NCBI GenBank assembly: GCA_038496445.1
Contig: JALMLS010000414.1
Location: 1-64,000 of the forward strand
DNA from: Trichosphaerium sp. ATCC 40318
Taxonomy: Eukaryota > Protista > Tubulinea
Direction of reading: 5' to 3'
Length of the DNA: 64,000 nt
The notes beneath the pieces are model-generated. The model was not told the origin of the DNA and searched no databases. It was given only the letters and a program-made list of their open reading frames with translations. Positions 15,583 through 55,798 of this stretch are shown in pieces. A program made the translations under genes and the position numbers. Position 1 is the first letter of the stretch, and each line of letters begins with the position of its first letter.

Positions 15583-15909
15583 TTGTTTGGTTGCATATCT
15601 CTTTGCTCAAGATAAAAACCAAACACAACCCTGAGAGGTCCCTTTTTTTTTTTTTCTTCCCTCTATGTAGTCTGTAGTGGTGGTAAATGCATTGCCTTCT
15701 TACCAAAAAAAGAAAAAAAAAGACCCAAAATAAGTGTACAATAAAACATAGTATTAATCTCCTGCCTGTGTTGTTAAGAGCCACCTAGGTCTAATGTATT
15801 GAGACAGTAGCCACACAGCCTTAGCTTATGCCCAGATTGTACTGTGCACAAAGCAATATGCTCACTTGCATAAGTAATTCTAAACAGCCTTCAATTTGTT
15901 GTTCTCATC

Positions 15910-16148
15910 TGATATCTCCTTTTGAATTTACACTCCATGCACATGCCGGCGTTATATGATCATAATTTATTGTACTGTAAAACTGAATAGAAGTCGAATT
16001 TCTTGTTTAAAAAGTCAAGTATTGTAAAACCATTTTCACTGACTGTTTTACTGTGCTGTTAACTTAAATCAATTTTCACTGTTTAACTTAAAGCCATTTC
16101 ACAGACTGGTGTACAAAGAAACACCACACAGAACAAAGAAAGCAAGTC
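15910..16148 (+). repeat. Conserved upstream block shared by the three intronless F-box paralogues (other copies about 28590-28785 and 31195-31432, minus strand)
   Basis: gatatctccttttgaatttacact...tgatcataatttattgtactgtaaa...gaagtcgaatttcttgt...ttttcactg present upstream of all three ATGs. Confidence 0.85.
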
Positions 16149-17030
16149 ATGGCACAAACACGCCCTTTAAATAATTCACTTCTAAAGACCACCACAATTA
16201 CGAACTTACCTGTTGAGATCATTTACGCTATTTTTAAAGAGGTAGCAACTGGAAAAGTCGTAATTGTTGCTCTACGAAGCCTACATAACCTATCAGTGTG
16301 TAAACAATGGCATACAATAGCTGCAGATGATGTATTATGGCGTGAGGTTTACAGTATCCATTACAACCTGGAAAACTCCGGCTACACAAGTGGATGTTTC
16401 TATCCTCCATTTTTCAACCAAAATCCACCAAATCCAAGAAGATTGGACTTGTCACTCACGTGGAAGCAAAAATGTTTCACAGAGTGTGTCTTTATTGACA
16501 AAATGCGAATTAGTGGTTTCTTGATGTACTACACCATGGAATATCTTTATTCTGCGTCAGATAGCTCAGCAGAGGATTTTCTGAGCTACCAGCAAGATAT
16601 TATCGAGGAATTCGATGCACTCGTTTCTACTCACATTGATGCTGTTCATACTTTCTTGGAGAAAGTACTTCTTGATAAAAAGTACCATGATGCATTCTTG
16701 GTTTTGTACGATACATGGGATAAAAAAGCGTCCTTCATGGCGGATGGGTTTTATACTGATGCTCGCATAGACCACCCTCCATCTGATGTTTTACGTCCAA
16801 TGATAGGGGTAGTATTTACTGGAAATACACTCAAGAACAATAAGCCAGCATGGTTAGAGTTTTTGAAAGATTTTACTGAAAGCGATACATATCTGCAAGT
16901 GTGTCCTGAATATTTTGGTGAAGATATGTTTCAGGTGGTCGACGAATATACACCAGAAGATACAGAACTTCTAAAATTAATTAGTGATACTATGAGTGTT
17001 GGGTACATGCTTGAGGATCTCAATCAATAG
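16149..17030 (+). CDS. Intronless F-box protein, paralogue 1 (293 aa)
   Basis: ITNLPVEIIYAIF...LSVCKQWHTIAADDVLWR F-box; C-terminal region not recognised. Confidence 0.85.
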   Translation: MAQTRPLNNSLLKTTTITNLPVEIIYAIFKEVATGKVVIVALRSLHNLSVCKQWHTIAADDVLWREVYSIHYNLENSGYTSGCFYPPFFNQNPPNPRRLDLSLTWKQKCFTECVFIDKMRISGFLMYYTMEYLYSASDSSAEDFLSYQQDIIEEFDALVSTHIDAVHTFLEKVLLDKKYHDAFLVLYDTWDKKASFMADGFYTDARIDHPPSDVLRPMIGVVFTGNTLKNNKPAWLEFLKDFTESDTYLQVCPEYFGEDMFQVVDEYTPEDTELLKLISDTMSVGYMLEDLNQ

Positions 17031-17441
17031 TCTTAAAAGAAAAGAAGCAAATACAAAAAAAAAAGAAAAGTAATTCAAATTGTTTTGATTTTTTGAATCT
17101 TTTGCGTTGCCATTTTGCACGTGGTATTGAACCCAAACAGTAAATTCGCAAGTTCACTTGGTAAATAAACGTGTGCACAATAAATAAGAGCTATGCTTTT
17201 TTGTGTTGTAGCTTTAGCATACAAAAAAACGATCACGTGATTTTGCAGTGCGAAATAAGTTTCTATCACACAAAACCAAAGATGTCATGCAATACAATTA
17301 CTACTTATTACAAACGGAAAACTGGTTTTATTTTTATTTGGTTATAACCCCACTAGCGAATCCATTGAAGAAATATTTGATTTTCTCTTTTTTGGTTCAT
17401 AAAAACAAGAAATCCAAAAAAAAAGTAAAGTAATTTTTTTC

Positions 17442-18863
17442 TCAGAAAAAGTGTGACTTTTGAGAGTTGTTTACAATACGTCTTAGCCAGAAAATTTGAC
17501 CAAAGATAGCAAGACCCAAGACTACCATTTCCATGATTGACCAGAAGAGTACTTGAGAGTTTGTACCTTCAGCAACTACGATTTTTAAGTCAGTTTTCTG
17601 CACACCATGAATTCAAAAAAAACTGAACCAAATGAATTTTCTCGTCTACTACGTGAACTGAACAACAAGTAGACTACATGCGTACCATTTCTGTGAATTC
17701 TCTCCTTTGAGATGAGATGATGTTGCATATTCTGGACTTGAGAAACTTCATGTTCAGCATCAGCCAGCTCACGCATAGTAAACTCAAGATCCTCTAAAAA
17801 AGAAAAAAAAAATTAATAATTCAAAAGCGAACAACTAAAACGTGCCACACGTGATAAAAATCAAAAGATAAAAGAGAACGAATACAGCACTAAAACAAAA
17901 TTATGATGCGTACTTGGTACTAGCTTGTCCTCTTGGTATGGTTTCCATACTTCAACATCAACTGATACAGTCTTGGCTGTGAATCTAGAATAATCCGTTT
18001 AGTTTGACACAGAGTTTGATAATGAAAGGTGTCAAGCGTTGGCGTTATGTTTTGATCGTGTTTAGAAGTAATAATTATGGGAAGAAGAAAAAAAACACCA
18101 CCAAGGATATCAAATAATAGTAGATGATTCGGTACAGCGATTTTTGATGATGTGCAACGTGGCAAGTAGTCAAAAAATTGAATGCTGATGTGGAAATGCT
18201 TTCAGTGCGTTTTTACGTGGTCTTACCTTGCCATATGGTTGCTAAAACACACGGAGTATGTGCCAGGGGTCTTTACTTCGTAAATAGTATCAGACTCGTC
18301 TCTATTGGAAAGTTAAACAGACAACGCCAATAATGAGTCTGATTTCGCTTTGATCAAACGCATTTGAACTGGACGGTTGTTTTTAAACGTTTTTGGTCAA
18401 TGTTGGATTTGTCATGTGTTGATTGGCTCAATAATACAGCCAAAGTAAATATTGATGCGTCGTAGGTGTGAAAAGGGCGTTCATGCGTCTTCACAAAAAA
18501 AAATAGGTAAAACGTCGACACTTGCCTGCCCTCGAAATACATCCTGTTAAACACTGTATTACCATTGTGTTTGATCTAGACGATATTGGTGGTATGAATA
18601 AAAAATAGAGCGTTTTTTTACCTCCACGCTAATATCTAAGAGTCCACCTTCTAATACTGCCCAATCTAATTCAATTTCGTGGCCGGCTTCCAAGTCCTCA
18701 TAAAAGCACTCCGCACCACGCGCTTCAACTCTGAAGGATACCTTGAATACATATTAGTGCTATTTCAACGATGTTGTGCATTATTGACACGTAAGCAACT
18801 ACATACCTCTAGACAAGTGCAAGCACAAAAGAGAGCGAATAATACAAGCGTTAACTTTACCAT
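17442..18863 (-). CDS. p24/emp24/gp25L (TMED) cargo receptor with GOLD domain
   Basis: MVKLTLVLFALFCACTCLE signal; VEARGAECFYEDL, GGLLDI, GTYSVCFSN; coiled coil; TNSQVLFWSIMEMVVLGLAIFGQIFWLR TM; C-terminal FF. Confidence 0.9.
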
Positions 18864-18996
18864 CGCGGGTTTTTGTCGCATTAGGGCTTAAACACCTTTA
18901 AGTCGCACGCAAACAAAATAATAGCCTACAACAAACTGCTGTACGTTAAACGTATCGCAATATGTTACTTACCGGTATGTTTAGGCTTAGTACACA

Positions 18997-21900
18997 ATGG
19001 AACCAGCTGAATGGATTGACCGTTTAGAAATTCAATCGTTACCGCGTCTACCTATCCCTGATTTAAAGGTGACGTTAGAAAAGTATTTATGGACTCTGTC
19101 ACCCGCACTTTCAAAAGAGGAGTTTGAGAAGACCCGAAAGGAGGTTGCAGTGTTTCTAGAGAAAGAAGGGCCACTTTTACATGATGAACTGCTCAGACTA
19201 GCCTCCGACGCTAAGACCAGTTGGCTAGAAGGCTTCTGGGACTCTATGTACCTAGAGATTCGCGATCCTTTGCCTATCAACGTAAATCCGTTTTTTGTAT
19301 TCCAAGACGACCCGTTACCAGCTAAAAACACGCAAGTACGAATTTTGCAACGGTAAAAGGGTCTATACCAGATCACACATCAAATTCACTCTTTTTTTTT
19401 AAACTCGGGAAGAATTTAGTATTCTAACGCTCGAGCGCATTCTTTGCGATAGACAACTCTAATTTTCCGTTTTACGTTTTAATACCATGTGTTTTTCTTT
19501 TTTCGCTTGTTGGCCATCACGTGACCTTTTTATCTTTTAGATAGCACGTGCGGCTACATTGACAAGGAGTACGTTATGGTTTATAAAACAGATAAGGAAA
19601 GGACAACTAGAACCAGACAGGCACGACCATTGTTTTTTTTCAGTCTTTTTTTTGGTGGAGCTAAAAAATGTGATGGTCCTCAACAGAACCTTTATACCTC
19701 ATTATGACGTGCTAATATTATATCTAGAGAACGCACTAAAACATTGTGTATGTCACAATATAGGAACATGTTTGGGGTACGTGTTTACGAGACACCAAGC
19801 AAAAACTTCTTTTTTTTTTTGTCAGAACGAAATTGCTTTTGCTGTTTTTTGAAACAGTCGAGGATATGTTATACCTTTGATTTAACTCTACGTAGTCAAT
19901 GCGCATACCAAGATATGGTCGAGATATCTATGTCACAAAGTAAGTTTGATATTATTGAGAATAGACTAAGAAGAAATCAACAAAATAATATATTCTAACC
20001 AATTTTTTATAGCTTTGAGTCCAAGCACATTGTCGTCCTAGCATTGGGCCAGTTTTATAGTTTTCAAGTATTAAACAAGAATAATAAGCCAATGCAAGAA
20101 GGTGCCTTGAGAGCATATATGCAAGCAATCCTCGAAGATGCATGGACGACCAGAGAAGAATCGCCAGAAACAATTTTCCCAGTAGGCACGTGTCATTCTC
20201 CCTCAACTTTTATAATCTCCTTGGTGTTTGATTCTACCTTGTTCCTTTATTCTTATTCAAATGTATCTAGGTATATTCACAACTCTTCCAAGAGATGAAT
20301 GGGCATCACAACACAATAAATTACGAAGCTTGGATCCTAAAAATGCTGAAACTTTAGATGTTTTAAAGTCAGCTTTATTCGTTGTTTGTCTTGATGACGT
20401 TAACCCTGTCAGTCTTACTTCAACGGCTAAAACAATGCTACGTACGTATATTAATAATAAAATGAGAAAAACCAAGCGAACATGGATGACAATGAACGTG
20501 TTTTAATTTTGTTTTTTGGTACAGATTCCGACGGTAAAAATCGTTGGTTTGATAAGACTATACAGCTCATTATTTGTGGAAACGGAAAGAGTGGTATCAA
20601 TATGGAACACACAGGTATTGATGGTCATACTTGTCTGCGATTCGCGTACGTAAAAACCTACAACAATGAGAACAAGAGCAAACTTTGTTAATGATCTCAT
20701 TCTTTCTTGTTGGCCTTGCTACTTTGTTGTTTCTCTTTCTGATATTCTGTGTAGTACTGATGTATATAATCACTCTGTTCGTAACAGATGCACTTCTCCA
20801 CTTGATCCTGGAGCTAGACCAATTGCTCAAGACCAAGATGAAGTGATTATTAATTTTGATAAATTGAGTTGGGTTCTCGACCCACAACTTCGAGATGCTG
20901 TTGATAGATCAGCTATAATATTTGATAAATTTATTCAACGTACTCAAACAGTCACACTCCACTTCACAGGGTATGACTATAAGCGACTCAGAGCTGGAAT
21001 TTTTACTTTTTTGGAAAAAAACATTTTTGTCTCTGGTTTTTTTTTAATGTGTTTCAAGGTATGGCAAGCGCTTTATTGTAAATCATCGTATGAGTCCTGA
21101 TGCTTTATTACAAATGAGCTATCAATTAGCTTATTTCAGACATACTGGTAAACCAGCTGTATCAACGTACGTCGAAGGAGAAACTTAGAGAACTAAGAGA
21201 AAAGGAACAAAAAATTCGAGTTTTTTTTTGTTGACGCTATTCTACTAGGTACGAATCTGCTATGACAAAAGCTTTCTATCATGGAAGGACTGAATGTTTA
21301 CGTACAGTTACCCCAGATGTGATTAACTTCTTGAATGGTACAACTCAAAACTCCAAAAAACAAAGATTTTTTTTGGATCTTTTGGATCTTTTTGTTGACA
21401 TGTTTTTTTTTTTTCTTGCAGTTATGGCTTCATCATCCAGCACACCTGAGGACCAAGTTAAAGCATTGAAACAAGCAGCAAAGACACATGTTATGGTGAT
21501 GAAATCATGCAAGAGTGGTAAAGGTGTAGATAGACACTTATATGGTCTATATTGGCTTGCTAAGCAGAAACAACAGCGTACTGCAAATTATGAGATTCCT
21601 AGCATGTATACTGATGCAGCATGGTCTAAGATTCGTCATGACGTTCTCAGGTGAGGTTTTTGTTGGTGTTTTTAGGGTTTTTTACGTGCTCTACGGAATC
21701 GTTGTTTATCGTTCTAAAAACCTTCTAGTACATCTAATTGTGGTGGATATGCGTTGTCGCTCTTTGGATTTGGGCCTACAGCAAGTGACGGCTTTGGTAT
21801 TGGATATATTATCAAGGATACATGCGTGCATTTGGCTGTAACTAACTTTAACGATGAAGCACGTCAGTTTGTGAATACGATCACAAAAACGCTTCTAGAT

Positions 21901-22026
21901 CTTGGTACGACATTCTACAGCCTTGTTTTTATACGCTATGTTAAGCTTATGCAGTATCTAGGCAGTCTATTAGAAGAACATGTGCCAGTACGTACATTAG
22001 AGAGACGTATGAAAGCCAGTTTGTAG
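18997..22026 (+). CDS. Carnitine/choline O-acyltransferase family protein, multi-exon
   Basis: SLPRLPIPDL, WLEGFW...YL...PLPINVNP, LCMSQY, NRWFDK, catalytic EHTGIDG, SPDAFIQ, YESAMTKAFYHGRTE, GKGVDRHLYGL, GFGP...DGFGIGY. Confidence 0.93.
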
Positions 22027-22363
22027 AGTGTAAGCAAGTATAAAAAGAACCGTATACCATAACCGCCCAATCTTGTTGTTTTTCTTCGTTTCAACTTTTT
22101 CCGTTTTTTTTTTAAACTACTCGGCTTTGTCTACGTGCCGGATATTACACCGTTTGACGTACAAAACACCGAAACTGTCAAATCATCAGTGTTCACGCGA
22201 TCACACGATAAGCGAACTATTTTTCACTACGCGTGTGTACTTTCACTTTGTTTCTCGGTTTCACACGTTTGACCGGCGTCAAGTGCTGTTTTAGATCGAA
22301 TTTGGGCGGAAAAATTCAGAAGGGTTTTTCAATTCTTTTCCATTTTGTTTAAACTGCGACACG

Positions 22364-25300
22364 ATGGAGAAAATACCAGTGCCTAATACGGCAGACCCTT
22401 CGAAGCGCAAAGAAGTGGTGTCTCTTTTTGTTCAAGTTGTAGAAGGTGAAGGCTTCTTAACAGGTACGCAATCACTTATAAGCGCGTGAAGGTGGTTGTT
22501 TTAAAGTAAAATGCAGACAATGGAGAAGAACCGGACTTGTATGCAGTTGTTTTATTGCCGGATAAGAAATTCCGTGTAGCTACAGATGGTACGATTGAGT
22601 CGTGGCGCCATTTGGCACTATCAACTTACAAAACGGGCGTCGGCGCATTTGCCGTATTGTTACACCCTACACATCACCGTAAATCAACTAACGCTATTAG
22701 TCGTCCCTAAAACACTTGCGCCAAAATGGTGGGCTGAAACTGTCATGTTTTTTGAGTCGGAACAAAGTATGGCGTTGAGACATATTGTTATTAAAGTGAA
22801 AGTACGTTTAAAGCATGTTTTGTTTTTAGACAAAATCTCAAATTTTATTCTGTAAACGAACCACACCCTCAACATGATCTGACAACTATTGTCTATTTTA
22901 GCATGTATTTTCATACTATGAACTTGTTTTTTGTTCACGGCGTGAACCACACGTTTTTTTTTTTTTTTTGATTTGTTTGTGTTTTTTAATCCCAGTTGAC
23001 ATTTTTTACCTTCTAGGCACGTGAGAAGTTAATGAAAAATATAAAGAATAAGACAGCAGGTGGTAAAGAGGTAGAGTATTTGAAATTTTCGAAAAAACTG
23101 CAAATCGCTTTGACGCACGTGTTTTAAATTATACATTGATATATATGTTTTTTTTTGGGTGCTAGCACGAATAATTTAAATTCGGAGTTTGTTTTCTCTT
23201 CCACCTGATTTCCCTAAATACCTAAACTATTTTCTTATGCTCCCTTTGTAGCTTGCTTCTTTCTTATATCAAGACTTTGGTTCTTTAGCATTGAACGAAA
23301 CAAGGTATGGTCGAGAAGAAGAAATTTCTCTTTCGGTTTTTTTTTCTTCCGTTTGAATGGGATATCATCCTTAGTTCCTTTTTTTTAGGGATGTGTGGAT
23401 AAATGCTGAAGAAGGAGGGTTCGGTAAACTACATATAACACTTAGATGGTCTAAAAAAATGGTACCTGTGTCATTCAAGTGCCTTGCAAAGTACGCTAGT
23501 TTATTCTTAGTTTTTTTTTGCTAGTGATGTTCTAGTCGATTAAACAATTTTTTAAGGTTGCTTCCACGCATGAGAATCAGTGTAAAAGCAAAAGCGTATC
23601 ACCCAGGAGAAGTCGTCAGTGGGTTGTTAACCTACACCCCTACGAAATCAGTAAAGGTACGCTAGTTAGACCTACTCCTTGTCAAGGTTTTTTTCGATTG
23701 TTTTTAGTTCCCGCTCTCGCAAAAGCACGTGTTTTTTTCTCACTTCGTTAACAATCTTGAAAATAGATGAAAACGGGATTGTATATTATGTTGTACATAG
23801 AGGTACCTAAGCGAGAATTTTTTTAGCTCTTGAAGAGCGTTCACTTTTTTTTTGCGGCTTTTTCCGAGGAACTCAAACCAAGCGTAGGAAAATGTTTCGT
23901 GGTCAGAGAATAATGGTAGCTCTTCGAACACTCACCAAGCAAGACATGTACATAGTTCTCAGAGTATGCTTGTAAAAGATGTGTCAAAGAACGGAACGGT
24001 ATGTTCGTTGTGGCTCCTGCAATGGTCTGAACACTAATAATTCTTTTACAGAAAATTATTCATGCCGGACTTCATCAATGGACGTTTCAGTTTAAATTGC
24101 CTTTGAGGACACCACCTAGTTTTAGATCACCTCATGGTCGTATCACTTACTCGTTGATGGCTTTCGTGGATAGGTTCAAAGTGGGCTCGGAGAAGAATGT
24201 TCGAATCGACATAGATGGTAAGCTTTTACTCTTTTTTTCTTTCTTCTTTGTTCTTGCTCTGTTACAGAAACCTTTTTGAGCTAATAATATGTTACAGTTA
24301 TTAGACCAATATTAGAGAAAATGGATGCTGATGGCAAACCACGTGCTTACGTATGTAACAACAGCAGGAATATTTTTTTATTCCATGAACGACTTGACTT
24401 TTGAAGTTCATGCTTTTTGTCTCGGATTGTGAAGCATCGCTAATGCTTTTTTTAGGAACACGTGGATGAAAAGACTAAAGTGCGAGTATGGTGTAGACCA
24501 AATCATCACGTGTTCTTCACTGATGATACTAAAGAGCTGTCTGTTGCTGCTGTAAGTTGGGTGTTTTTTTTGAGCTCTTTCCTTTTGGGTATTTTGTGTT
24601 GTCTTCGGGTACTAATGTTAGTTTATAGCAAGTTCATAACCCTACAAACAGTAAAATTAAAGTGCGACAAGTCAAGTTGTTGGCACAAGGGGTCTACAAG
24701 GCGAAGAAAAACCAGAAAACTCAAATGTAAGTGTTCGAAGAGCCATTATTTAGATGTTCAATCACACTCACGTGCTCGTAGAAAAACTATTGGAAAAGTG
24801 ACATACGATAGAACTATAGCTCCTTTTGACCAGTACGTACTAAGAGAGGATAAATGATACCAATTGCAGAGCAACAGCTCAACTTTGTTGATACTTCTTG
24901 TTGTTTTTGGATTTTGTTTTCTGACTTTCCTTTAGGTTTCAAGATACAGCTGTTATACCTTTTGATAGTTATAAGGCTCTATATCCATCTATAAATAGAA
25001 GTCTTTCTCATATAATTCATATTGAGTACTTCCTGATTGTGTCATGTAAACTACTAAAAGGACTCAAAGGTAATCTCTTTTTTTTGTTTTTTTTTTTGGT
25101 TTCACTTTTTTTGTTATTTTCATGCTCATTCACGCGTGGTAAATTGTTTGTTTCGTTGAACAGCAATTCAGTGTTTACATTGAAGTTTGTTTTTTTTTTT
25201 GAGTGGCCCATGGGAAGTTCACTTTTTTGAAGAGTTTTTTTTTGGATTTTATGCTAAGGATTTGTTATAGGCAAGAAAATAAAACTCATTGTCCCTATAT

Positions 25301-27131
25301 TTATATCTGGCCATAAAAGACATTATAAACCTATTTTTACAGTACCTATAAATGGATTAGATAGCTCCTTTGCCATTGAACATCAGAGTGCGTCTTTTTT
25401 TTTTTCAGTTTTGTTGTTCTTTCTTTCCTTTTTTCTCGTTTTGTTTGTTGTTTTCTGACTTTCTTTGTAGCATTTGCAACATTACAAACATCAGATCCAC
25501 AGCGTAAACATACAGATTCTTCATCTAAATATGCTTCTGGGTCAGTATCTCCTGGTGTGTTATCACAATCTGGTTCTGGTTTGGGTACTGATTCGGGCTC
25601 AGATTCGAGCTCTGATTCTGATGTACAGATTGTACCATTTGATCCAAGGATAGAGCCTGTTATTGATACAGGATTATCACGTGCTCAAAGTGGTACGTCA
25701 TCAAAATATTTTAGTTACTTAGACCGGAGCTGCTTAATGTTCATTTTTTTTCTTTTTTTTTTTTGGATCTGTTCCTTCGCTTATACCTATTTTTTAGTAC
25801 CTGTTAAAAGTCGCATGTTGATAGATGTTGGTAGAAATACAGATTTAGTAAGAAGTACACCTAAAGAGACAGTAACAAGGACGCCTACTATGAATAGTGC
25901 GCATTCTTTACAATGATTTATATTTCCTATTTTTTTCTTAATTCTGACAAATCCTAACCACATACACGTGTTTTATCATTTAATTTCAAGACCCCTTTTT
26001 ATTGATTAACTTCTATTTTAGAGAGACATCACAGAAATAGATCACAATCACAAGTACCACGTCCTACAATTACAATGCAACAAAGAAGTAGACCAACGAG
26101 TCCAAGAGACATTGTTCGTGCTGTTTCTACCAATAATAGACAGAGAACACGTGCCAAGTCGATGAGGCGTCCTAAACGGGTTTTATCTAACCCTTTCGTT
26201 GATGAATTATCTAAAACACCTACACAACAACGTGCTATTGGGTACGACTCAAATCAACTTCAACAACCTTTTCTAAAACCTGCTTGTAATTTTTTTCTTT
26301 TTGTGTTCATGTAGCATGAGACCACGTTTTTTCACTTTAAATATGTTGGTGTTGAATAATATCTCTTTACTTTTTTTGGAAGGGCCTTGATGACGCTCAA
26401 AAAAAGCGATTAAAAACTTTAGGGCAGTTTTCTTTTTTTTTCAATTAGCGATTTTTGTCTTGTTTGCTAAGCAGAATATTAGGTCTACACCTCAAGCAAT
26501 GTATTCTCCTATTACAACAAAAGCTGTACCAGATGTATCTGGCACTAATCCTTTTGATTTTGGATCGACAAAGCAAAGCAAAGGTATGACCACGCATAGT
26601 TTTTTATGAAAACGATTTTTCGTGTTCACAGAATTCTTCGCTAATAATCACCTTTGTAGTAAATACGTCTGTTGCAAGCCCTGGTTCAAGAAGCTTAGCG
26701 CATTCTAGGCAATCGAGTACATTATCTAATCCATTCTTACCTATCCTTGGTACGTGTCCGCTGACTTATCAACCTTTTTTTTTTTCAGTTGTATTTTTTT
26801 ACAAACAGCATTTTTCTGAAAAGACAAAGTTCTTGAATTTTGAAAACAATACTTTTTTGATACTGATACATTGTTGTTGATTCATTGACATATCAATCAA
26901 ATTCTATTTTTTCGTTTGCTTTGATGAAATTGCCAAAACTTTTTTTTTTTTGGTCTTTGTATTTATTTTTTTTGTTTAGAGGAAGATACACGAAAGGCTT
27001 CTTTTAGTGAAGTTGGAAATACATCTCCAACAGCATTGCATAATTCTAGTAATAGTATATCATCCCTAAGCTCAACAATATCAGCAAGTCGCCAAGATAT
27101 TGACGCATGGTTTGATCCTTTATTTCAATGA
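22364..27131 (+). CDS. C2-domain plus arrestin-fold protein with long S/T/R-rich tail containing NPF motifs
   Basis: C2: FVQVVEGEGF...PDLYAVV...ATD|VVPKTLAPKW. Arrestin-N: YHPGEVVSG...AGLHQWTFQFKLPLRTPPSFRSPHGRITYSL. Arrestin-C: YPSI...HIEYFLIV. Tail has SNPF, TNPF, SNPF and ends WFDPLFQ*. Confidence 0.8.
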
Positions 27132-27684
27132 AAACTTGAAAAAAAAACCACATATTTTGTGTTTTTTTAACAAGCTACGTTTGCCGTCACCTCAAAATAT
27201 TAATTGTACATATAAATAAAAATAAGTTGTAAAGCATATTGGTACTTTTTTCGGTTTAGCCTCCTTCCATAAACCTACAGCACTCACCAAATATATGTAT
27301 CTTTTTAAACTGCCAACCAATTTGTAGCAAGCATGTGATTTTCTGTTTATAGGCATGTCTAAGTACTGTGTGAAGATACACTAACATCATAGCTTGCAGA
27401 GCTGCAAAAGGTTACATCACAAACCATCTCAAGTCAAACTCAGTGTACTTTTTATTTTGATTAAAAAATGGTACATAATCGTTTAAATATTACTTGTACA
27501 TCAGTGAGGAAAGCGGTTACCGGTAACATGTTGCAGTATCCATGACGTGGGTCCGTGCAAGGACTAATGGTAGTGATTCTAGAAACGTGGTTCAAAAGAT
27601 GACAACAGCATTTGATACTAAAGTTGCTTTACAATAAAAAACTAGGTTCAACCTTTATTTGTTTTTTCATCGTTTCTCTAAAGT

Positions 27685-28572
27685 TTATTGATTGCGATCC
27701 TCAAACATGTACTCAACACTCATAGTATCACCAATTAATTTTAGAAGTTCTTTATCTTCTGGTGTATATTCCTCGACTACCTGAAATATATCTTCACCAA
27801 AATATTCAGGACACACTTGCAGATATGTATCGCTTTCAGTAAAATCTTTCAAAAATTCTAACCATGCTGGTTTATTGTTCTTGAGTGTATTTCCAGTAAA
27901 TACTACCCCTATCATTGGACGTATAACATCAGATGGAGGGTGGTCCATGCGAGCGTTAATATAAAACCCCTCTTCCATGAATGACGCTGCTTTATCCCAT
28001 GTATTGAGCAAAACCAAGAATGCATCATGGTACTTTTTATCAAGAAGTACTTTCTCCAAGAAAGTATGAACAGCATCAATGTGAGTAGAAACGAGTGCAT
28101 TGAATTCCTCAACAATTTTCTGCTGTTGGTTAGTAATATCCAGAGCTGCTAAGCTAGTATGTGATACAGAACAAAGATATTCGATGGTATACTCCATCAA
28201 GAAACCAGTATGACGCATTAAATCAATAAAAACACACTCTGTGAAACATTTTTGCTTCCACGTGAGTGACAAGTCCAATCTTCTTGGATTTTGTGGATTT
28301 TGGTTGAAAAATGGCGGATAGAAATATCCACTTGTGTAGTCGGAGTTTTCCAGGTTGTAATGGATACTATAAACCTCACGCCATAGTACATCATCTTTAG
28401 CAACTGCGTGCCATTGTTTACACACTGATAGGTTATGTAGGCTTCGTAGAGCAACAATTATGACTTTTCCAGTTGCTACCTCTTTAAAAATGAGGTAAAT
28501 GATCTCAACAGGTAAGTTCGCAATTGTGGTGGTCTTTAGAAGTGAATTATTTAAAGGACGTGTTTGTGCCAT
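27685..28572 (-). CDS. Intronless F-box protein, paralogue 2 (295 aa)
   Basis: Aligns end to end with 16149-17030. Confidence 0.85.
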   Translation of the reverse strand: MAQTRPLNNSLLKTTTIANLPVEIIYLIFKEVATGKVIIVALRSLHNLSVCKQWHAVAKDDVLWREVYSIHYNLENSDYTSGYFYPPFFNQNPQNPRRLDLSLTWKQKCFTECVFIDLMRHTGFLMEYTIEYLCSVSHTSLAALDITNQQQKIVEEFNALVSTHIDAVHTFLEKVLLDKKYHDAFLVLLNTWDKAASFMEEGFYINARMDHPPSDVIRPMIGVVFTGNTLKNNKPAWLEFLKDFTESDTYLQVCPEYFGEDIFQVVEEYTPEDKELLKLIGDTMSVEYMFEDRNQ

Positions 28573-29017
28573 GACGTGGTGGCAACAAACAGGCTGTGAA
28601 ATGGATTTAAGTCAAACAATGTGAAATTGATTAAGTTAAAAAGCAATCAGTGAAAATAGATTTACAATACTTGACTTTTTTTACAAGAAATTCGACTTCT
28701 ATTCAGCTTTACAGTACAATAAATTATGATCACATAAACCCAGTGTATGCGTGGTAGATTGTAAATTGAAATGGAGGTATAACAGATTGTTCTGTTACAC
28801 GTGTACATTGTAATTCAATCTCATATGCATCTGCTAGTACGGCACCTTACGCCACTCTCTAAACTTGCTTGGTAAGAACATTGAGGATATTGCAATGTTA
28901 TTCAGGCCGCTGTCAAGCCAGACGAGTACTGGCTACCTCATCAAACCCACAAGACGGGAGTCCGACAACCTAACACCAACACCCATCAACCCTTTCAAAA
29001 ACAAATGAATCCATACT

Positions 29018-29130
29018 GTATCATTCAAGTTTGCAAAACTTTGTACCTTTTTACCGTCTGTAACTGTTGGTTTTCGTTTTTAGTCAGATCTTACAGATCG
29101 TGCAAGTTCTGTTAGTTCTTGCAAGATCTA
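29018..29130. repeat. Dispersed repeat of about 110 bp; inverted diverged copy at about 59522-59630
   Basis: gtatcattcaagtttgc...ttggttttcgt...tctgttagttcttgcaagatct matches the reverse complement of 59522-59630. Confidence 0.7.
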
Positions 29131-30318
29131 TCAAGAACTACAAGATTAGTTCTGGAAAAAAACAAACACGCACATATTATTGCAACACCACGTGTTTTAA
29201 CCACCATTATATTTTGTTTGGTATGTTAACTTATGTAGTTCTGTCGATCTCTAAGGTCCAACAATTGTCTCCTACACTCTAAAACGTATTATTACGCTAT
29301 GTAAATACCGTACTCAGCGCAAGATACTTTGGAAGCGGTTGTAATTTTCTTGAGGTTTTAACGTTAGACGACAACCTAGGTTAGAACCAACAAGAGACAG
29401 AGTAAGCAACAAGATAGATTTGGAGGAAGACTAACGTCTCGGTGGCTCAAACGCAACACACGAGTAAGGATTTATATCTTGTACATGTGCTATTTATGCA
29501 AAAAAATGGATCGACAAATTCAGTTTTCAATAAATACAGGTTTTATGGATCAGAAAAAGTCCCTTTTTCAAGGGCGGAAAGTGGGATGATTGTTGCTTGC
29601 CATCTGTTGATCTGTGCGTGCCGGTTGCGGTAATGTCAGATTATGGTTGGTCAGATAGTTTCTTCAAACGCCTGGAATTCCAGCGGAATATACAGACATT
29701 TTCTCACGGTTAATACTTCTCTATGCGCCTGAATGTGCCAGCATTCGCGGGTGGTGTGCACCACCCATTAGACATGTATCAAGCGTTGTGATTAGTGGTT
29801 TTGCAAACCAGTTAAGCGAACATACTCAAATGTGGTTGTCGACAATAGCTTGTATGCCTTTGTTTGAGAATAGACTGGTCAATATAAACAGTTTAATGAA
29901 AGTATGTTTCAAAACATAGCTCCTGATTAGTAGCAAGCATGTACATTCTTATCCTACAAGAGTACTTAATGAGAATAAATCAATACACGAGCATGAGAAA
30001 ATCACATGCTAAAAATTGACTTAATCCGCGTCAACACGTGCCATAAGGAGAAAGCCAATAAGCATTACAATATCTCAAATCTCTTGCAAGACTGTACATG
30101 CTCATAATAACTGCTACATGAGAGGTGCTAGTTTCCACCACGGCTTTACTTTTTTTGCAAAACATTGTTTTTATTGTCTCACTTTGTTTTACTTGGATCT
30201 TTAGGGAACTAAGAAACGTTTATTATCTTCTAAAGTAAACCAAGTTGATCTCATAGTTGCTAACATCTTCTCCATGGAGGATCAGTCTATGTTTAGTTTT
30301 TTGATTGTGATGAGTACA

Positions 30319-31194
30319 TTATTGATTGCGATCCTCAAACATGTACTCAACACTCATAGTATCACCAATTAATTTTAGAAGTTCTGTATCTTCTGGTGTA
30401 TATTCATCGACTACCTTAAACATATATTCACCATAATCATCAGGATGCATGTAAAGATATGAATTGTTTGCTGCAGTATAATCTTTCAAAAACTCTAACC
30501 ATGCTGGTTTATTGTTCTTGAGTGTATTTCCAGTAAATACTACCCCTACCATTGGACGTATAACATCAGATGGAGGGTGGTCCATACGAGAGTCATAAAA
30601 AAACCCATGATTTTCCATGAATGACGCTGATTTGTCCCATGTATCGTACAAAACCAAGAATGCATCATGGTACTTTTTATCAAGAAGTACTTTCTCCAAG
30701 AAAGTATGAACAGCATCAATGTGAGTAGAAACGAGTGCATTGAATTCCTCGATAACATCTTGCTGGTAGTTAAGAAAGCTATCTACTGCAGAACAAAGAT
30801 ATTCCATGGTGTAGTACATCAAGAAACCACTACATCGCATTTTGTCAATAAAGACACACTCTGTGAAACATTTTTGCTTCCACGTGAGTGACAAGTCCAA
30901 TCTTCTTGGATTTTGTGGATTTTGGTTGAAAAATGGCGGATAGAAACATCCAGTTGTGTATTCGGAGTTTTCCAGGTTGTAATGGATACTGTAAACCTCG
31001 CGCCATAGTAAATCATCTGTAGCAATCGTGTGCCATTGTTTACACACTGATAGGTTATGTAGGCTTCGTAGAGCAACAATTACGACTTTTCCAGTTGCTA
31101 CCTCTTTAAAAATGAGGTAAATGATCTCAACAGGTAAGTGAGTAATTGTGGTGGTCTTTAAAAGTGAATTGTTTAAAGGACGCGTTTGTGCCAT
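30319..31194 (-). CDS. Intronless F-box protein, paralogue 3 (291 aa)
   Basis: Aligns end to end with paralogues 1 and 2. Confidence 0.85.
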   Translation of the reverse strand: MAQTRPLNNSLLKTTTITHLPVEIIYLIFKEVATGKVVIVALRSLHNLSVCKQWHTIATDDLLWREVYSIHYNLENSEYTTGCFYPPFFNQNPQNPRRLDLSLTWKQKCFTECVFIDKMRCSGFLMYYTMEYLCSAVDSFLNYQQDVIEEFNALVSTHIDAVHTFLEKVLLDKKYHDAFLVLYDTWDKSASFMENHGFFYDSRMDHPPSDVIRPMVGVVFTGNTLKNNKPAWLEFLKDYTAANNSYLYMHPDDYGEYMFKVVDEYTPEDTELLKLIGDTMSVEYMFEDRNQ

Positions 31195-31833
31195 GACTTG
31201 CCTTCTTTGTTCTGTGTGGTGCTTCTTTGTAAAACAATCAGTGAAATGGATTAAAGTTAAACAGTGAATATTGATTCAAGTTAAAGAGCACAGTAAAACA
31301 ATCAGTGAAAATGGTTTTACAACCGACTTTTTAAACAAGAAATTCGACTTCTCTTAAGCTTTACAGTACAATAAATTATGATCATATATTGTCAGCATGT
31401 GCATGGTAGAGTGTAAATTCAAAAGGAGATATCGGCAGTTGAGATCAAAGCTCATCTACTAACTTGTCTACCCACGTGCAGATAAATTTAAAACGTTGTG
31501 GTAGTGTATTTGTGGTACATACAAAAGGCTCTTGACTGTGGAACGTAAATGTAGGAAGGAAATTACAGTCAATACAACAGTTGAAAGGGTATCAGTTTCC
31601 ACGCTTTTAAACAAACTAAGCTCATTAATAATGAAATTCTTTGTTTGCTATTTCTAGCCCTCATTGCGAACAGCGTACTTTTCAGCTATTTTTTAGTGTC
31701 TTTATCCTCGCTTCATAAACCACGTGTTATCTGTTTATGTCAATAACAAAGGATCAACTTGTCTCAGTAGTACCTTTATTCTAAATAGATATTTTATTAA
31801 AGGCACCTACAAGGCGTATGTTCAAAGCAGAAT

Positions 31834-37557: not shown

Positions 37558-38421
37558 ATGAGTCTAAATAAACAACTGCGAGAAGAAAAACAGTCGACAA
37601 TCGATAAAAAATATCAAACACCACAAGCTCTTCTTGTTACCGACATTTTAGGCGAGATAATCAAATATCTGCTATATACAGACGTAAAGAGCGTTGTAAA
37701 GCTCAAATCAACGAACAAGCACTTTCGCAACATCATTTCTGGTATGGCACGTGGTAAAACACGCCTTTTAAAGGATGTCTCTGTACTTGAAGTAATTCAT
37801 GATGAAGATACGGAAGAAATTAAAGAAAGGTTAATTACGCACGTGTTACAAGAAGATGTTTTATTTTTTTCTGTTTTAAATGATGAAGGACCGAAAGAGT
37901 CATTGTGGGACTTGGCTGTATCTCACGTTATCCGTTGGGCAAAATACGAACATTACGAAACTGCATTAGAAGACAACCTTAGCGACATTGACTATTCTTT
38001 GCCTGAACCAAACCACGAGTTTGAATTCGTAGATTCTCGCCCCAAAACATGTGATGTTTGTAGAAAGCCCACAAAGAATTGTGTGTGCGTGTACAAACCG
38101 GACCTCAGAGTATACTGTCCTAAATGTTACTATTTGCGATGTCCGCTGGTAGCTCTGCCTATTTGTGGGGGAGGTTCTGGGTACTACTATAGTGCAGCTA
38201 ACTTGTTTCGAATTGATGATGTACGTGATCATTATGAAGAAAATGAAGAATGTTTAAGTTGTATTGGAGAGTGTTTTAATGATACTATGAAAGCTCTAAG
38301 CAAATACCCAGAATTGGCATCTAAATGGATATCTGCTGGCATTGAAATATATGTTTTATTTGGTATAATGTACTACGGAGAGAACGATGATTTAGCAGTT
38401 ATCTTTGTTCCAAAACAATGA
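37558..38421 (+). CDS. Intronless protein with divergent F-box-like N-terminus and Cys-rich (putative zinc-binding) region
   Basis: LVTDILGEIIKYLLYTDVKSVVKLKSTNKHFRNII; CDVC...CVC...CPKC; 287-aa open frame. Confidence 0.6.
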   Translation: MSLNKQLREEKQSTIDKKYQTPQALLVTDILGEIIKYLLYTDVKSVVKLKSTNKHFRNIISGMARGKTRLLKDVSVLEVIHDEDTEEIKERLITHVLQEDVLFFSVLNDEGPKESLWDLAVSHVIRWAKYEHYETALEDNLSDIDYSLPEPNHEFEFVDSRPKTCDVCRKPTKNCVCVYKPDLRVYCPKCYYLRCPLVALPICGGGSGYYYSAANLFRIDDVRDHYEENEECLSCIGECFNDTMKALSKYPELASKWISAGIEIYVLFGIMYYGENDDLAVIFVPKQ

Positions 38422-49093: not shown

Positions 49094-51072
49094 TAGTGAA
49101 AAGTATAAAATGTCCCAACCACAGGTAAAATGTCCCCACTTTTCAACACTTTTTTTGAACAAAAAATTGATGCTACGCTCTTAAAAAAAATACTTTTTTA
49201 TTCTGATTTTAACATGATGTGTCCATTTGCGTTGAGTACCAGTTACCAAAAGATCGCCCTCCTGTACATTCTTCTTCGTGCATTTCAACCATTTTTTTTC
49301 CATCAAATTCTTTTAAGCAGCATGGGCATGACCCATACTGATCACAGACTTCACACCACACCCACATAGATCCTCCCCTCCATAAGCGCTCGCCACATAT
49401 CTGACAGGTCTCACATTCATTTTTGTACTTCTTCTTAGCAGTGGCAAGTTTTTTTTCCTGTTTTTTTTTTTCTTTTTTCTGTCTTGTCTCCTCTCTACGA
49501 ACATTCTCCTCCTCAATTTTTTTTTGTTTAGCATCTCTTTTGAGTTGCCTTAGCTCTGCCTTGTGTTTAATTTCTTGTTCTTTATCTATCTTTTTTTTTT
49601 TTGCTAATTCAACCATTTGGGTAGCAATATAAGCATCCCCTTTTGGTACTGTCATTGGACCGATTGTTAGGGCATTTACTTGATTGCTGTGGCTGTATAG
49701 CTCATCCATAGCGTTTTTGGCTTTTCTAGCAGTATCGGTGATGAAGGAAGGTGATTGTTTAGGTTGGACCCCTACATTTTTTGAAGCATGATTTAAGATC
49801 AACTTTCTGTTGTAGGGTACAATGCCCACGGACTTCCATGCTGATTTTAAGATTTTGGGAGACAGTGCTTTGGTCTCTGCAGCTGCAACAGCCATTATGT
49901 CATAACGTCGTGTTTTATGTTTGATCTCTGTGCCACTTTCAATTGTAATTTTCCTGTTTAATTTATATGCCTGAGCTAGGGTAGCAAATGGCTTGTCATC
50001 TAAGGGTTGCGTGAAATGTGAGGTATGAGGCACCCATGTGATAGTGTGTACATGCTGTTCAAGGCATTTTTGTAACGATTCTGTTTTAATGTGGCTGGCC
50101 AATCTATCAAGGAATAAAAATGCAACCCTGTCCCCTTGAAAAATTTTCAAGTGCTTTAAGAACACATCAAGAATTTTTGGCCAAATTTCGTTGGTCACAT
50201 ACCCTTTACCATGAAATATATAGTATCTAGGCCATGAAGAGCGGGTATTTGTTGGTCTGGGTACTGTCATTTGATGCACTTTTTGTTCATCACCTTTGTT
50301 TTTTGCTGCCATTATATAAATTGACACCAGTACGCGTCCAGAGGCTGAAACAAACGGAATCAACGTGAGAGGGCTGCTTGTGTTATTGTTCAGCCGCCCA
50401 GCAATTTTCATCGTTCTATCTTGAAAGGTAATGTGTTGATACTTGTCACTTGATGCTGTTATCAACTTTTCGTCACAATTGAACATCAAATCTGGGTTCA
50501 TATAATACATCTCTGAGAATCGCTCAAAACCATCACACCAAGCTTCTACACGTGGCAGAGTGACAGGAGATACACGGCAGCGGCGAATTGTCTTCGAAAC
50601 AGTGGCTTTGAGTTCAATATTGTGTCTTTCAGTGAAGCCATCACACCAAGCTTCCATACTGGTCGACTTCTTCTTCTTGTACAGACTTTGTGCCATAGAT
50701 ATCAAGGCTGCACGTGATAGAGGCATATGACGCCCGCTAAAACTCAAACAGTAGCCAACCAACATTTCTTCTTCAAAATCCGTAAAAAGTTGGTTGCCAT
50801 GAGATTTGAAATTCTCCGAATTCTCCTTTGCAAATGCCCTCTGAACACGCTTTCGTAGTGATTCTGATTTAACACAGTGTTTTTTAGCCACTGTGATGCA
50901 AATTTGACGAATTGAGAGTGTTTGTGAAGGTTTACGCTTCTTTAGTTTATAAAGTACTTCCTTTGTGGCCTCTGCCATGTTTTTAGCCTTTGCGGCACTT
51001 CTGCGAGGCATTTTAAAAATTGAAAAGTGGGGACATTTTACCTAGAATTGGGACATTTTATACTTTTCACTA
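49094..51072 (-). mobile_element. Complete pogo/Fot1-like DNA transposon (1979 bp) with about 53-bp TIRs
   Basis: TIR tagtgaaaagtataaaatgtcccaa(ccac/ttct)aggtaaaatgtccccacttttcaa at both ends; ATT on both flanks; absent from the paralogous arm. Confidence 0.93.
49209..51011 (-). CDS. DDE_1 (pogo/CENP-B-type) transposase, DD35D, with C-terminal PHD-like zinc finger (600 aa, intact)
   Basis: N-terminal HTH-like region (LFTDFEEEML...WCDGFTERH); FNCDE, LFLDRLASH, HTSHFTQPLD with 35 residues between the 2nd and 3rd Asp; CQIC...WVWCEVC...CPCC. Confidence 0.92.
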   Translation of the reverse strand: MPRRSAAKAKNMAEATKEVLYKLKKRKPSQTLSIRQICITVAKKHCVKSESLRKRVQRAFAKENSENFKSHGNQLFTDFEEEMLVGYCLSFSGRHMPLSRAALISMAQSLYKKKKSTSMEAWCDGFTERHNIELKATVSKTIRRCRVSPVTLPRVEAWCDGFERFSEMYYMNPDLMFNCDEKLITASSDKYQHITFQDRTMKIAGRLNNNTSSPLTLIPFVSASGRVLVSIYIMAAKNKGDEQKVHQMTVPRPTNTRSSWPRYYIFHGKGYVTNEIWPKILDVFLKHLKIFQGDRVAFLFLDRLASHIKTESLQKCLEQHVHTITWVPHTSHFTQPLDDKPFATLAQAYKLNRKITIESGTEIKHKTRRYDIMAVAAAETKALSPKILKSAWKSVGIVPYNRKLILNHASKNVGVQPKQSPSFITDTARKAKNAMDELYSHSNQVNALTIGPMTVPKGDAYIATQMVELAKKKKIDKEQEIKHKAELRQLKRDAKQKKIEEENVRREETRQKKEKKKQEKKLATAKKKYKNECETCQICGERLWRGGSMWVWCEVCDQYGSCPCCLKEFDGKKMVEMHEEECTGGRSFGNWYSTQMDTSC

Positions 51073-53865: not shown

Positions 53866-55798
53866 GCTTTGGATCTATGTCTCAAGCGTAAAGTAATTTC
53901 AAACCCATTGAGAGCATGTAGACCTTAAAAAACGCATGAGGTGCATGGTACAACATCAACAAAATTGCACATTTTTAAAAGGTTTAGAAGATTACAGATT
54001 TTGTTGTTGAGTTTATTACCCGTCGGTACCACATGTGGTGGCATTACTACACTAACAAAATCGCACATTTTTAACAGCTCAAGACTTATTTAAGTGCAGT
54101 GTGGTTTAGTACTACATTACCCACCTTCTTTGTGGTTTGATTTGTCAGTATTTAGATAAGCAATACATTACTAACACTGGCTTAAAAGAATGGTGTTTAA
54201 GGTAATATCTAGTGAAGTTTCTCATTCACATAAAGTCAACGTTTTTAACAGATTACAACATTAGCACATCAAATGGCAACAAAACGAATGGTACAGGCTC
54301 TACACAATAAATAATATTTAATTAACAAATAATAGATAACACTTGAACAATTGGGCATAGAAGTTCTTCTACACGTTCCACTTGAACTACAACTTGATAT
54401 CATCGATTTAAATCCTGATATTTATTTAATATGGCCATTGTTATCTAAATACACGGCACTAACAACCAGATTCGATAATCAGTTTAAAAAGCATGGCAAA
54501 TGGAAGCGTTTCAGAACGATTAAGAATGAAAACCTCGAAACAGATAACACATGCCAAACCAAAGTTCTTCAGGTAAAGCATGTGGCAAAAACTCTAGTAT
54601 TGAAATTGCCCGCAGTCTCAATTTTCGGCAACAACATTTGAACAAATAAGACTGTAGTAGAGGCTAACAGATTGTTATATAGGTTGAAGAGACTTGGAGA
54701 CATGGTAAACGTCATGGACGACACAAGATGTGGCATACAAATGGACAAGAGTTGGAGGAGTATTATTACGTTAATGATATGAAAGAAGGAGAGTACAACG
54801 AGTGGAACAAGGATGGCCAGTTGGTGGTATGCTGTACATATAGCAAAGACAAAAAAGAAGGAGAGTACAAAGAGTGGTACTATCATGGCCAAATAAAAGT
54901 TCACTGTAATTACTCAAATGGTGTGGTTCATGGAGATTATAAGAGTTGGTATCATAATGAGAAACAATGGGAACTTTATAACTATGTTAATGGTAAAAAA
55001 GAAGGAGAATTCAAAGTGTTTCGTGTTGGTGGTTTGTTAGCAGAAAAAGGTACCTATTGTAATGGATTTCTAAATGGCAAGTTTGTATCATGGCAAGGTG
55101 ATGGACAAGTACATAGACAGATTTGTTACAGTAACGGAAAATACGATGGAGAATACAAGGTGTGGTGGAGTAGAGAGAAATTGAAAGTACATCAATATTA
55201 CCAAAAAGGAAAACATGAAGGAGAGTACAAGGAATGGTATGCAGATGGACAAATCAAAGTCAAATGTTTTCATGTTGATGATAAGATGCAAGGAGAGTAC
55301 AAGAAATGGTACAACAATGGTCAATTACAAGAGCACAGTCATTATGTTAATGGTTTGAGGGATGGTACATGTGAGAAATGGCATGACAATGGACAGTTAA
55401 AAGAGGTTTGTACTTGGGTCAATGGTAGAATTGAAGGAGAATTTAACCAGTGGAAGTCAAATGGAGAGTTATTTTACAAGTGTGTTTATTGTATGGGCTC
55501 AAAACTTTAAAGTGATAAGTGCTTTGGAATAAAGAATCTAACTATAACCCTTACCTATCATAAAATCGTTTTTTACATTTTTATGTGGTTGAGGCTTAAA
55601 AGTGGTCTGTGTTCTACCTGACATAAAAATGGAAATATAAAGGGTTATGTGTAGATGGTAAACTACAAGGAGAAGACATGGAATGGTACCCGACGACGTG
55701 GGTTGATAGTAAAAATCATGATGGTTAGAACAACTTGAATCTAAGTGCAGTGTGGAACGAAAATGGCGAAACAAGACAAATATATTAGCGAATTGCCT
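53866..55798. repeat. Arm B of inverted segmental duplication (empty-site reference for both TEs)
   Basis: See arm A. Confidence 0.9.
54273..55510 (+). CDS. F-box-like plus MORN-variant repeat protein, 3 exons, intact
   Basis: Exons 54273-54290, 54336-54572 and 54683-55510 join in frame: MATKRM|ITLEQLGIEVLLHVPLELQLDIIDL...LLSKY...KVLQ|VEETWRHGKRHG... then about 11 GEYKEWY-x-x-GQ repeats. Confidence 0.88.

Follow-up and report, generated by a model that had tools for sequence, protein, structure and literature searches.

Mosaic ancestry and three divergent patches in a trio of intronless F-box genes from the amoeba Trichosphaerium

Thomas is said to have described, in Genome Research in 2006, lineage-specific expansions of F-box receptors in nematodes and plants, in which the F-box is joined to an FTH, DUF38 or FBA domain. 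Concerted evolution with islands of divergence, in which paralogues are made alike by gene conversion outside certain segments that are kept apart, has been described for many duplicate genes, and giant viruses carry large families of F-box and MORN paralogues. Here we compare with these systems a trio of intronless F-box genes that lie within a single stretch of 64,000 nucleotides (the window; positions 1 to 64,000, forward strand, of contig JALMLS010000414.1, assembly GCA_038496445.1) of the amoeba Trichosphaerium sp. ATCC 40318. The trio probably represents an F-box subfamily that evolves by birth and death, with gene conversion keeping its framework uniform and islands of old divergence surviving at predicted loops. 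The lineage-specific subfamily is new; its mode of paralogue evolution is already known.

All three genes were found as intact open reading frames (ORFs) where the initial annotation had placed them, and every peptide it quoted was present. They are the following:

16149-17030, + strand: copy 1 (c1), intronless F-box gene, intact ORF of 293 aa, Pfam F-box-like score 33.1 bits
27685-28572, - strand: copy 2 (c2), intronless F-box gene, intact ORF of 295 aa, Pfam F-box-like score 32.9 bits
30319-31194, - strand: copy 3 (c3), intronless F-box gene, intact ORF of 291 aa, Pfam F-box-like score 33.2 bits

The encoded proteins are 86-87% identical to one another, copy 1 is inverted relative to the tandem copies 2 and 3, and the G+C content of the genes (35-38%) is like that of the surrounding DNA. 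Across the framework, by which we mean everything outside the three patches described below, the ratio of nonsynonymous to synonymous differences per site (pN/pS) was 0.28-0.49 and significantly below 1 in five of the six pairs tested, and the maximum-likelihood ratio of nonsynonymous to synonymous rates (omega, model M0) was 0.44. Broken relatives exist alongside them; the trio are protein-coding genes under purifying selection.

The N-terminal F-box that had been claimed for these proteins is borne out by the Pfam F-box-like profile (PF12937), which scored ~33 bits in three of three copies against a curated cut-off of 24.3; in copy 1 the hmmscan match spans profile positions 1-45 of 47. The domains lie as follows:

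16197-16352, + strand: F-box-like domain of copy 1 (residues 17-68)
28369-28524, - strand: F-box-like domain of copy 2, equivalent of copy 1 residues 17-68
30991-31146, - strand: F-box-like domain of copy 3, equivalent of copy 1 residues 17-68

In common with the F-box of Skp2 (PDB 1FQV, 1FS1) and with PF12937, the trio has the pattern LPxEI...I/F...L...VCK.W......D..LW. Skp2 F-boxes were also the best sequence matches of the trio in PDB, but weak ones (E 0.13-1.4), and unlike Skp2 the trio has no leucine-rich repeats (LRRs) after the F-box. The genome encodes Skp1 (PF01466, 99 bits), whose gene is spliced over three exons. From the F-box alone, we infer that the trio proteins are adaptors of the Skp1-cullin-F-box (SCF) type: the N-terminal F-box would bind Skp1 within an SCF ubiquitin ligase, while the substrate-binding part would be the orphan C-terminal domain (~220 aa, predicted to be all-helical).

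Three patches of strong divergence interrupt the framework, within a few bases of where the initial annotation had described them:

Patch 1: 16497-16619 (+) in copy 1; 28096-28224 (-) in copy 2; 30736-30846 (-) in copy 3; indel-rich core at about codons 134-151
Patch 2: 16704-16775 (+) in copy 1; 27940-28011 (-) in copy 2; 30577-30651 (-) in copy 3
Patch 3: 16872-16937 (+) in copy 1; 27778-27843 (-) in copy 2; 30412-30480 (-) in copy 3

Within the trio, 71 of 246 ungapped patch positions vary (29%) compared with 39 of 618 framework positions (6%), an odds ratio of 6.0 (p=3e-17). In a 30-nt sliding window, long blocks of 100% DNA identity are broken by three short troughs, in which identity falls to 12-42% (patch 1 core), 63-85% (patch 2) and 53-67% (patch 3); in patch 3, copies 1 and 2, unlike the other pairs, are 100% identical in DNA. 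Every indel among the copies is in frame (a multiple of three bases), as had been claimed. Many of these fall in the patch 1 core, which is rich in Ser, Asp and Glu, and variation in patch 2 is modest. When relatives from outside the window, named here by their contigs in the assembly, are added to the nucleotide alignment, patch 1 resolves into four sequence types: copies 1 and 3; the intact copies on C72 (c4) and C298 (c5); the broken copies on C390 and C272; and copy 2 alone.

We examined the mosaic structure of these genes using five sequences, the trio with c4 and c5 as reference. The alignment holds 65 parsimony-informative sites, many of which support conflicting splits that are arranged block-wise along the gene. 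Permutation tests of the pairwise homoplasy index (PHI) were significant for all sites (p<=2e-4), for the framework only (p=0.001) and for the patches only (p=4e-4). A parsimony search placed two breakpoints, near alignment nt 189/190 and 570/571, with a gain that beat 199 of 200 column shuffles (p=0.005), and the best topology changes along the gene from (c1,c4)(c2,c3) through (c1,c3)(c4,c5) to (c1,c2)(c4,c5). In a GENECONV-style test, copies 1 and 2 are the same at 39 consecutive polymorphic sites over patch 3 (alignment nt 736-788; p<=1e-4), in keeping with the earlier observation that these two share this patch. Mosaic ancestry is thus statistically supported by PHI, by the breakpoints and by the c1-c2 tract, and recombination or gene conversion has reassorted the variable segments. 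The initial annotation had reported that which two copies are closest changes from one part of the gene to another, and had proposed a search for recombination breakpoints. The switch itself is real; three of the shared features listed for it need correction. NPQN and IGDTMSVEYMFE also occur in the C72 copy, which makes the differences private changes of copy 1 and therefore no evidence that copies 2 and 3 are closest, and LYDTWDK versus LLNTWDK tracks a split shared with the C72 copy.

A comparison with non-coding sequence suggests that the frameworks have been kept alike. Among the four closest copies (c1-c4), the upstream non-coding divergence (K) is 0.10-0.27, compared with a synonymous divergence (dS) of 0.07-0.14 in the framework; for copies 2 and 3 the values are 0.27 and 0.07. 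In the patches, dS among c1-c4 (0.25-0.53) equals or exceeds the non-coding K. Read most simply, these values give the copies a greater age than their frameworks suggest.

The excess divergence of the patches is synonymous as well as nonsynonymous. Synonymous differences are 2-5 times more frequent in the patches than in the framework (proportion of synonymous differences, pS, 0.21-0.38 versus 0.07-0.18), and the Nei-Gojobori dS across pairs is 0.25-0.84 in patches versus 0.07-0.25 in the framework; the synonymous excess is significant in six of seven pairs, and in patch 1 dS reaches 0.46-1.08 in all pairs except c1-c3. The trees of patches 1, 2 and 3 have lengths of 2.4, 1.3 and 4.5 substitutions per codon, those of the framework 0.3-0.9. 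With self-written codon models (GY94, F3x4; site models M1a versus M2a; the same five sequences) and each patch given its own topology and branch lengths, omega was 0.50 in patch 1, 0.69 in patch 2 and 1.04 in patch 3 (1.21 in its core). None of these is significantly above 1; patch 1 is below 1 (p=0.03) and patch 2 is not significantly different from 1. Within patches, M2a did not improve on M1a (likelihood-ratio test statistic, LRT, 1.74; p=0.42), and about half of the patch codons fit an omega of 0.13-0.19, the other half an omega of ~1-1.5. Between the C72 and C298 copies, the patch 1 protein is conserved despite a dS of 0.66 (omega 0.15, p=2.6e-4), indicating that patch 1 is constrained within a sequence type. 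Diversifying selection on the patches is therefore not supported, and the raised patch dN/dS expected of the postulated surface like a complementarity-determining region (CDR) was not borne out.

The C-terminal domain that contains the patches had been called unrecognised, and it found no relative in any collection we searched. Residues ~95-293 match no Pfam family, and the trio proteins carry none beyond the F-box. A word-index search of 5.8 billion proteins with copy 1 returned nothing at E<=0.001, and a profile search of 1.84 billion protein representatives returned no convincing relative; its three weak matches were dismissed (a repetitive 1509-aa protein and an unconvincing 205-aa protein, both at chance level, and one protein matching only in the F-box). 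In a PDB profile search, Skp2 F-boxes (E>=0.13) were the only matches, with nothing for the C-terminal domain, while the best ESM Atlas score by features (0.79) was within noise and an IMG/VR scan gave no relative. The domain is not of a known substrate-binding type (LRR, WD40, Kelch, FBA, FTH or others). AlphaFold models, built on a six-sequence alignment for the full length and for the C-terminal domain, are both all-helical at low confidence (predicted local distance difference test, pLDDT, 48.9 and 58.3). With a predicted model as query, Foldseek found nothing in PDB at E<=0.001; the Atlas fold search gave a generic helical match to an Arm-like cluster (template modelling score, TM, 0.53), and the best match in VIA-align, the Munc13 MUN domain, had a Z of 9.3, below the tool's stated noise level for helical models; none of these matches assigns a fold. 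In both models the patch 1 core (about residues 134-150) falls at helix ends or in an inter-helix loop, and the cores of patch 2 (residues 195-206) and patch 3 (residues 245-252) fall in predicted inter-helix loops with pLDDT <50. Tentatively, then, the models place the variable cores at helix ends and inter-helix loops.

To define the extent of the family, we searched the whole genome assembly (70.3 Mb in 642 contigs) with protein and DNA; the published draft is of 70.87 Mb with 37.7% G+C (PMC10521059). The family comprises five intact close copies, four relics and one paralogue at 34% identity. Its members beyond the trio are these:

C72, 133341-134216: intact copy (c4)
C298: intact copy with a diverged and shortened C-terminus (c5)
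C390: pseudogene with three in-frame TAG stops
C463: 5' fragment of a family gene
C272, 40442-40626: internally deleted relic
C91 (the contig of the trio), 70020-70412, + strand: internally deleted relic, ~6 kb past the end of the window
C39: distant intact paralogue, 34% identity

The relic on C91 has kept the upstream segment but, of the coding sequence, only ~140 nt at the start and ~80 nt at the end, with a stop inside. The C39 paralogue has an F-box score of only 16.5 bits and changes length at the same places as the patches. No family member, the C39 paralogue included, has an intron. At least 150 further F-box-like matches in the genome score above the Pfam cut-off, a lower bound given that 150 of 1809 first-look candidates were scored; the F-box repertoire, probably of hundreds of genes, is very large for a 70-Mb protist genome, and the trio family is one small subfamily therein.

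The duplicated unit measures ~1.15 kb and consists of ~240 bp of upstream sequence, the coding sequence and ~35 bp downstream; longer flanks are shared only between copy 2 and the C72 copy. Its upstream parts are as follows:

15909-16148, + strand: co-duplicated upstream non-coding segment of copy 1, ~240 bp; by extent of homology it reaches ~28787 in copy 2 and ~31447 in copy 3
15960-15981 (+), 28708-28729 (-) and 31360-31381 (-): upstream motif of 22 nt, identical in the three copies

Homology between the copies stops 35-45 bp past the stop codon in an A-rich run (17031-17075 in copy 1, with equivalents elsewhere). This A-rich 3' end and the lack of introns could hint at retroposition; a simple retrocopy is made less likely by the ~240 bp upstream that were duplicated along with the gene. 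No terminal inverted repeats were found at the ends of the unit, and a transposon-borne gene was rejected because there are no terminal repeats and the unit holds the F-box ORF alone (no transposase). The 22-nt motif has three exact matches in the window against zero expected; as a sequence of 21-22 nt it also occurs at C72:133173-133193, and genome-wide it is found only upstream of the trio and the C72 copy. The motif lies 140-190 bp ahead of the ATG, with two or three CATTT(T)CAC(T/A)G-like boxes after it, and may be a family-specific promoter or 5' untranslated region element.

The account that we consider the probable one is as follows. The family would grow and decay by duplication of the ~1.15 kb unit, and repeated gene conversion, involving the inverted copy 1 as well as the tandem copies 2 and 3, would keep the framework 90-100% identical and make each gene a mosaic. 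The three short, indel-prone patches would stay outside the conversion tracts and so keep older synonymous and nonsynonymous divergence. This exclusion may be mechanical, with heterology blocking the tracts, or converted patches may be selected against; either fits the data. Occasionally a whole patch would be transferred, patch 3 between copies 1 and 2 being a likely example. Constraint on the patches would then be relaxed to moderate, with no demonstrable positive selection, and the patches may give each paralogue a different substrate preference. Like paralogues known to evolve in concert with islands of divergence, the trio has a framework that is near-identical even at silent sites, older and sharply bounded islands with raised dS, and a mosaic phylogeny with significant recombination tests. 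It differs from such pairs of genes in having five partners on three contigs, and in that its islands fall in a putative ubiquitin-ligase receptor domain. With the nematode and plant F-box expansions the family has in common an N-terminal F-box followed by a variable, putatively substrate-binding C-terminal domain in which most of the variation lies, clustered paralogues, and birth-and-death turnover that leaves pseudogenes. In contrast to those expansions it has only five intact members, its predicted all-helical orphan domain is unrelated to FTH, FBA, LRR, WD40 or Kelch, and positive selection is not demonstrable once the regional rate difference is allowed for.

Several observations weigh against the conversion account. 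A low framework dS could also mean constraint on synonymous sites rather than conversion, and PHI on third codon positions alone was not significant (p=0.14, 23 sites). Confidence in the structure models is low (pLDDT 49 and 58), which keeps the assignment of the patches to loops tentative, and the sequences align with some uncertainty in the gapped patch 1 core. With regard to selection, M2a fits the whole gene better than M1a both on one tree (LRT 34.3, p=3e-8) and on three segment-specific trees (LRT 25.7, p=2.6e-6, with 17% of codons in a class of omega 3.6); omega in patch 3 is 1.0-1.2 overall, with single pairs as high as 2.8; and five sequences give selection tests little power. The candidate sites cluster in the patches, which leaves room for some positively selected sites among them. 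We nevertheless do not accept the whole-gene signal as positive selection, because the model's single synonymous rate per gene fails here. Conversion combined with old islands set a trap for these tests, producing p values of ~1e-6 to 1e-8 that were gone once the patches had their own synonymous rate.

The same data can be read in terms of immunity, as the initial annotation had done: the patches would form one substrate-binding surface under diversifying selection, and conversion would shuffle their variants into combinatorial SCF receptors for intracellular immunity against giant viruses or symbionts. The shuffling of segments is real, almost all members carry a patch 1 and a patch 3 sequence of their own, the whole-gene site models place their class of omega 3.6-5 in the patches, and patch 3 has an omega of at least 1; in addition, the constraint on patch 1 within a type means that it is not junk, and the host genome is reported to carry many giant-virus-derived genes (PMC10521059). 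However, the excess of patch divergence is also synonymous, own branch lengths leave no omega significantly above 1 and M2a without support, and five intact copies do not make a large, expanded repertoire. We therefore regard this reading as unlikely, and we give equally little credence to its wider form, in which the orphan helical domain would be a new SCF substrate-recognition module, the three loop patches would set specificity, and old types would be selected and reassorted by conversion against fast-evolving targets such as giant-virus proteins; were it true, the amoeba would hold a small combinatorial set of ubiquitin-ligase receptors. At the other extreme, the patches might be functionally irrelevant linkers, that is, unconstrained, indel-prone loops that drift neutrally and are spared conversion only by heterology, in paralogues that are redundant. 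The half of patch codons that fit an omega near 1, the coincidence of the cores with low-confidence predicted loops, the Ser/Asp/Glu-rich composition and in-frame indels of the patch 1 core, and the length changes of the C39 paralogue at the same places would all suit such linkers. Against this stand an overall omega significantly below 1 in patch 1, the strong conservation of its protein between c4 and c5 in spite of their dS, and the half of patch codons at low omega, which together make neutral linkers an improbable explanation.

Other genes and ORFs noted in the window are these:

18997-22026, + strand: multi-exon choline/carnitine O-acyltransferase gene, located between copies 1 and 2; three or more ORF pieces match PF00755
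31834-32985, - strand: intronless MORN_2-repeat ORF (PF07661, E=1e-39), 640 bp from copy 3
37558-38421, + strand: intronless ORF of 287 aa with no Pfam match
49209-51011, - strand: pogo-type transposase, 600-aa ORF with DDE_1 and Tc5 HTH domains
54728-55510, + strand: intronless MORN_2-repeat ORF (PF07661, E=1e-19)

The MORN_2-repeat ORF next to copy 3 has an N-terminal LPxD-I..L motif that is vaguely F-box-like, with no Pfam F-box detected. The 287-aa ORF has a Cys-rich middle (CDVCRK...CVC...CPKCYYLRC) and an N-terminus that is loosely F-box-like. The multi-exon acyltransferase gene between the copies indicates that ordinary, intron-rich DNA of the host surrounds the cluster.

Had the family been acquired horizontally, for example from a giant virus, the copies would be left over or recruited from genes with which viruses manipulate their hosts, and would not be native receptors. 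Of the domains in 1581 putative giant-virus transfers into Trichosphaerium, F-box and MORN are reported to be the most frequent, and genes of this genome are reported to average 8.7 introns (PMC10521059), compared with none in any family member. As in giant-virus families and these reported transfers (PMC10521059), intronless F-box genes adjoin an intronless MORN_2 gene, a second one lies in the window, and neither the word-index nor the profile search found cellular relatives. Yet no viral homologue of the trio proteins appeared in the IMG/VR scan or among the 1.84 billion proteins of the profile search, which sets the trio apart from the giant-virus F-box/MORN families; the G+C content matches the surroundings; and an ordinary multi-exon gene lies between the copies. 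The MORN neighbour was rejected as a viral marker, its database relatives being only generic MORN_2/YwqK-type proteins at ~30% identity. On balance, acquisition from a virus seems to us improbable, and we treat a viral origin of the family as a minor rival to duplication and conversion within the host.

With this family, the catalogued F-box receptor architectures gain a C-terminal domain that had not been recognised before, from an amoeba that has been little studied. As it stands, the pattern is one of ordinary paralogue evolution; if the patches set substrate specificity, the family would offer a tractable small system for the diversification of SCF receptors.

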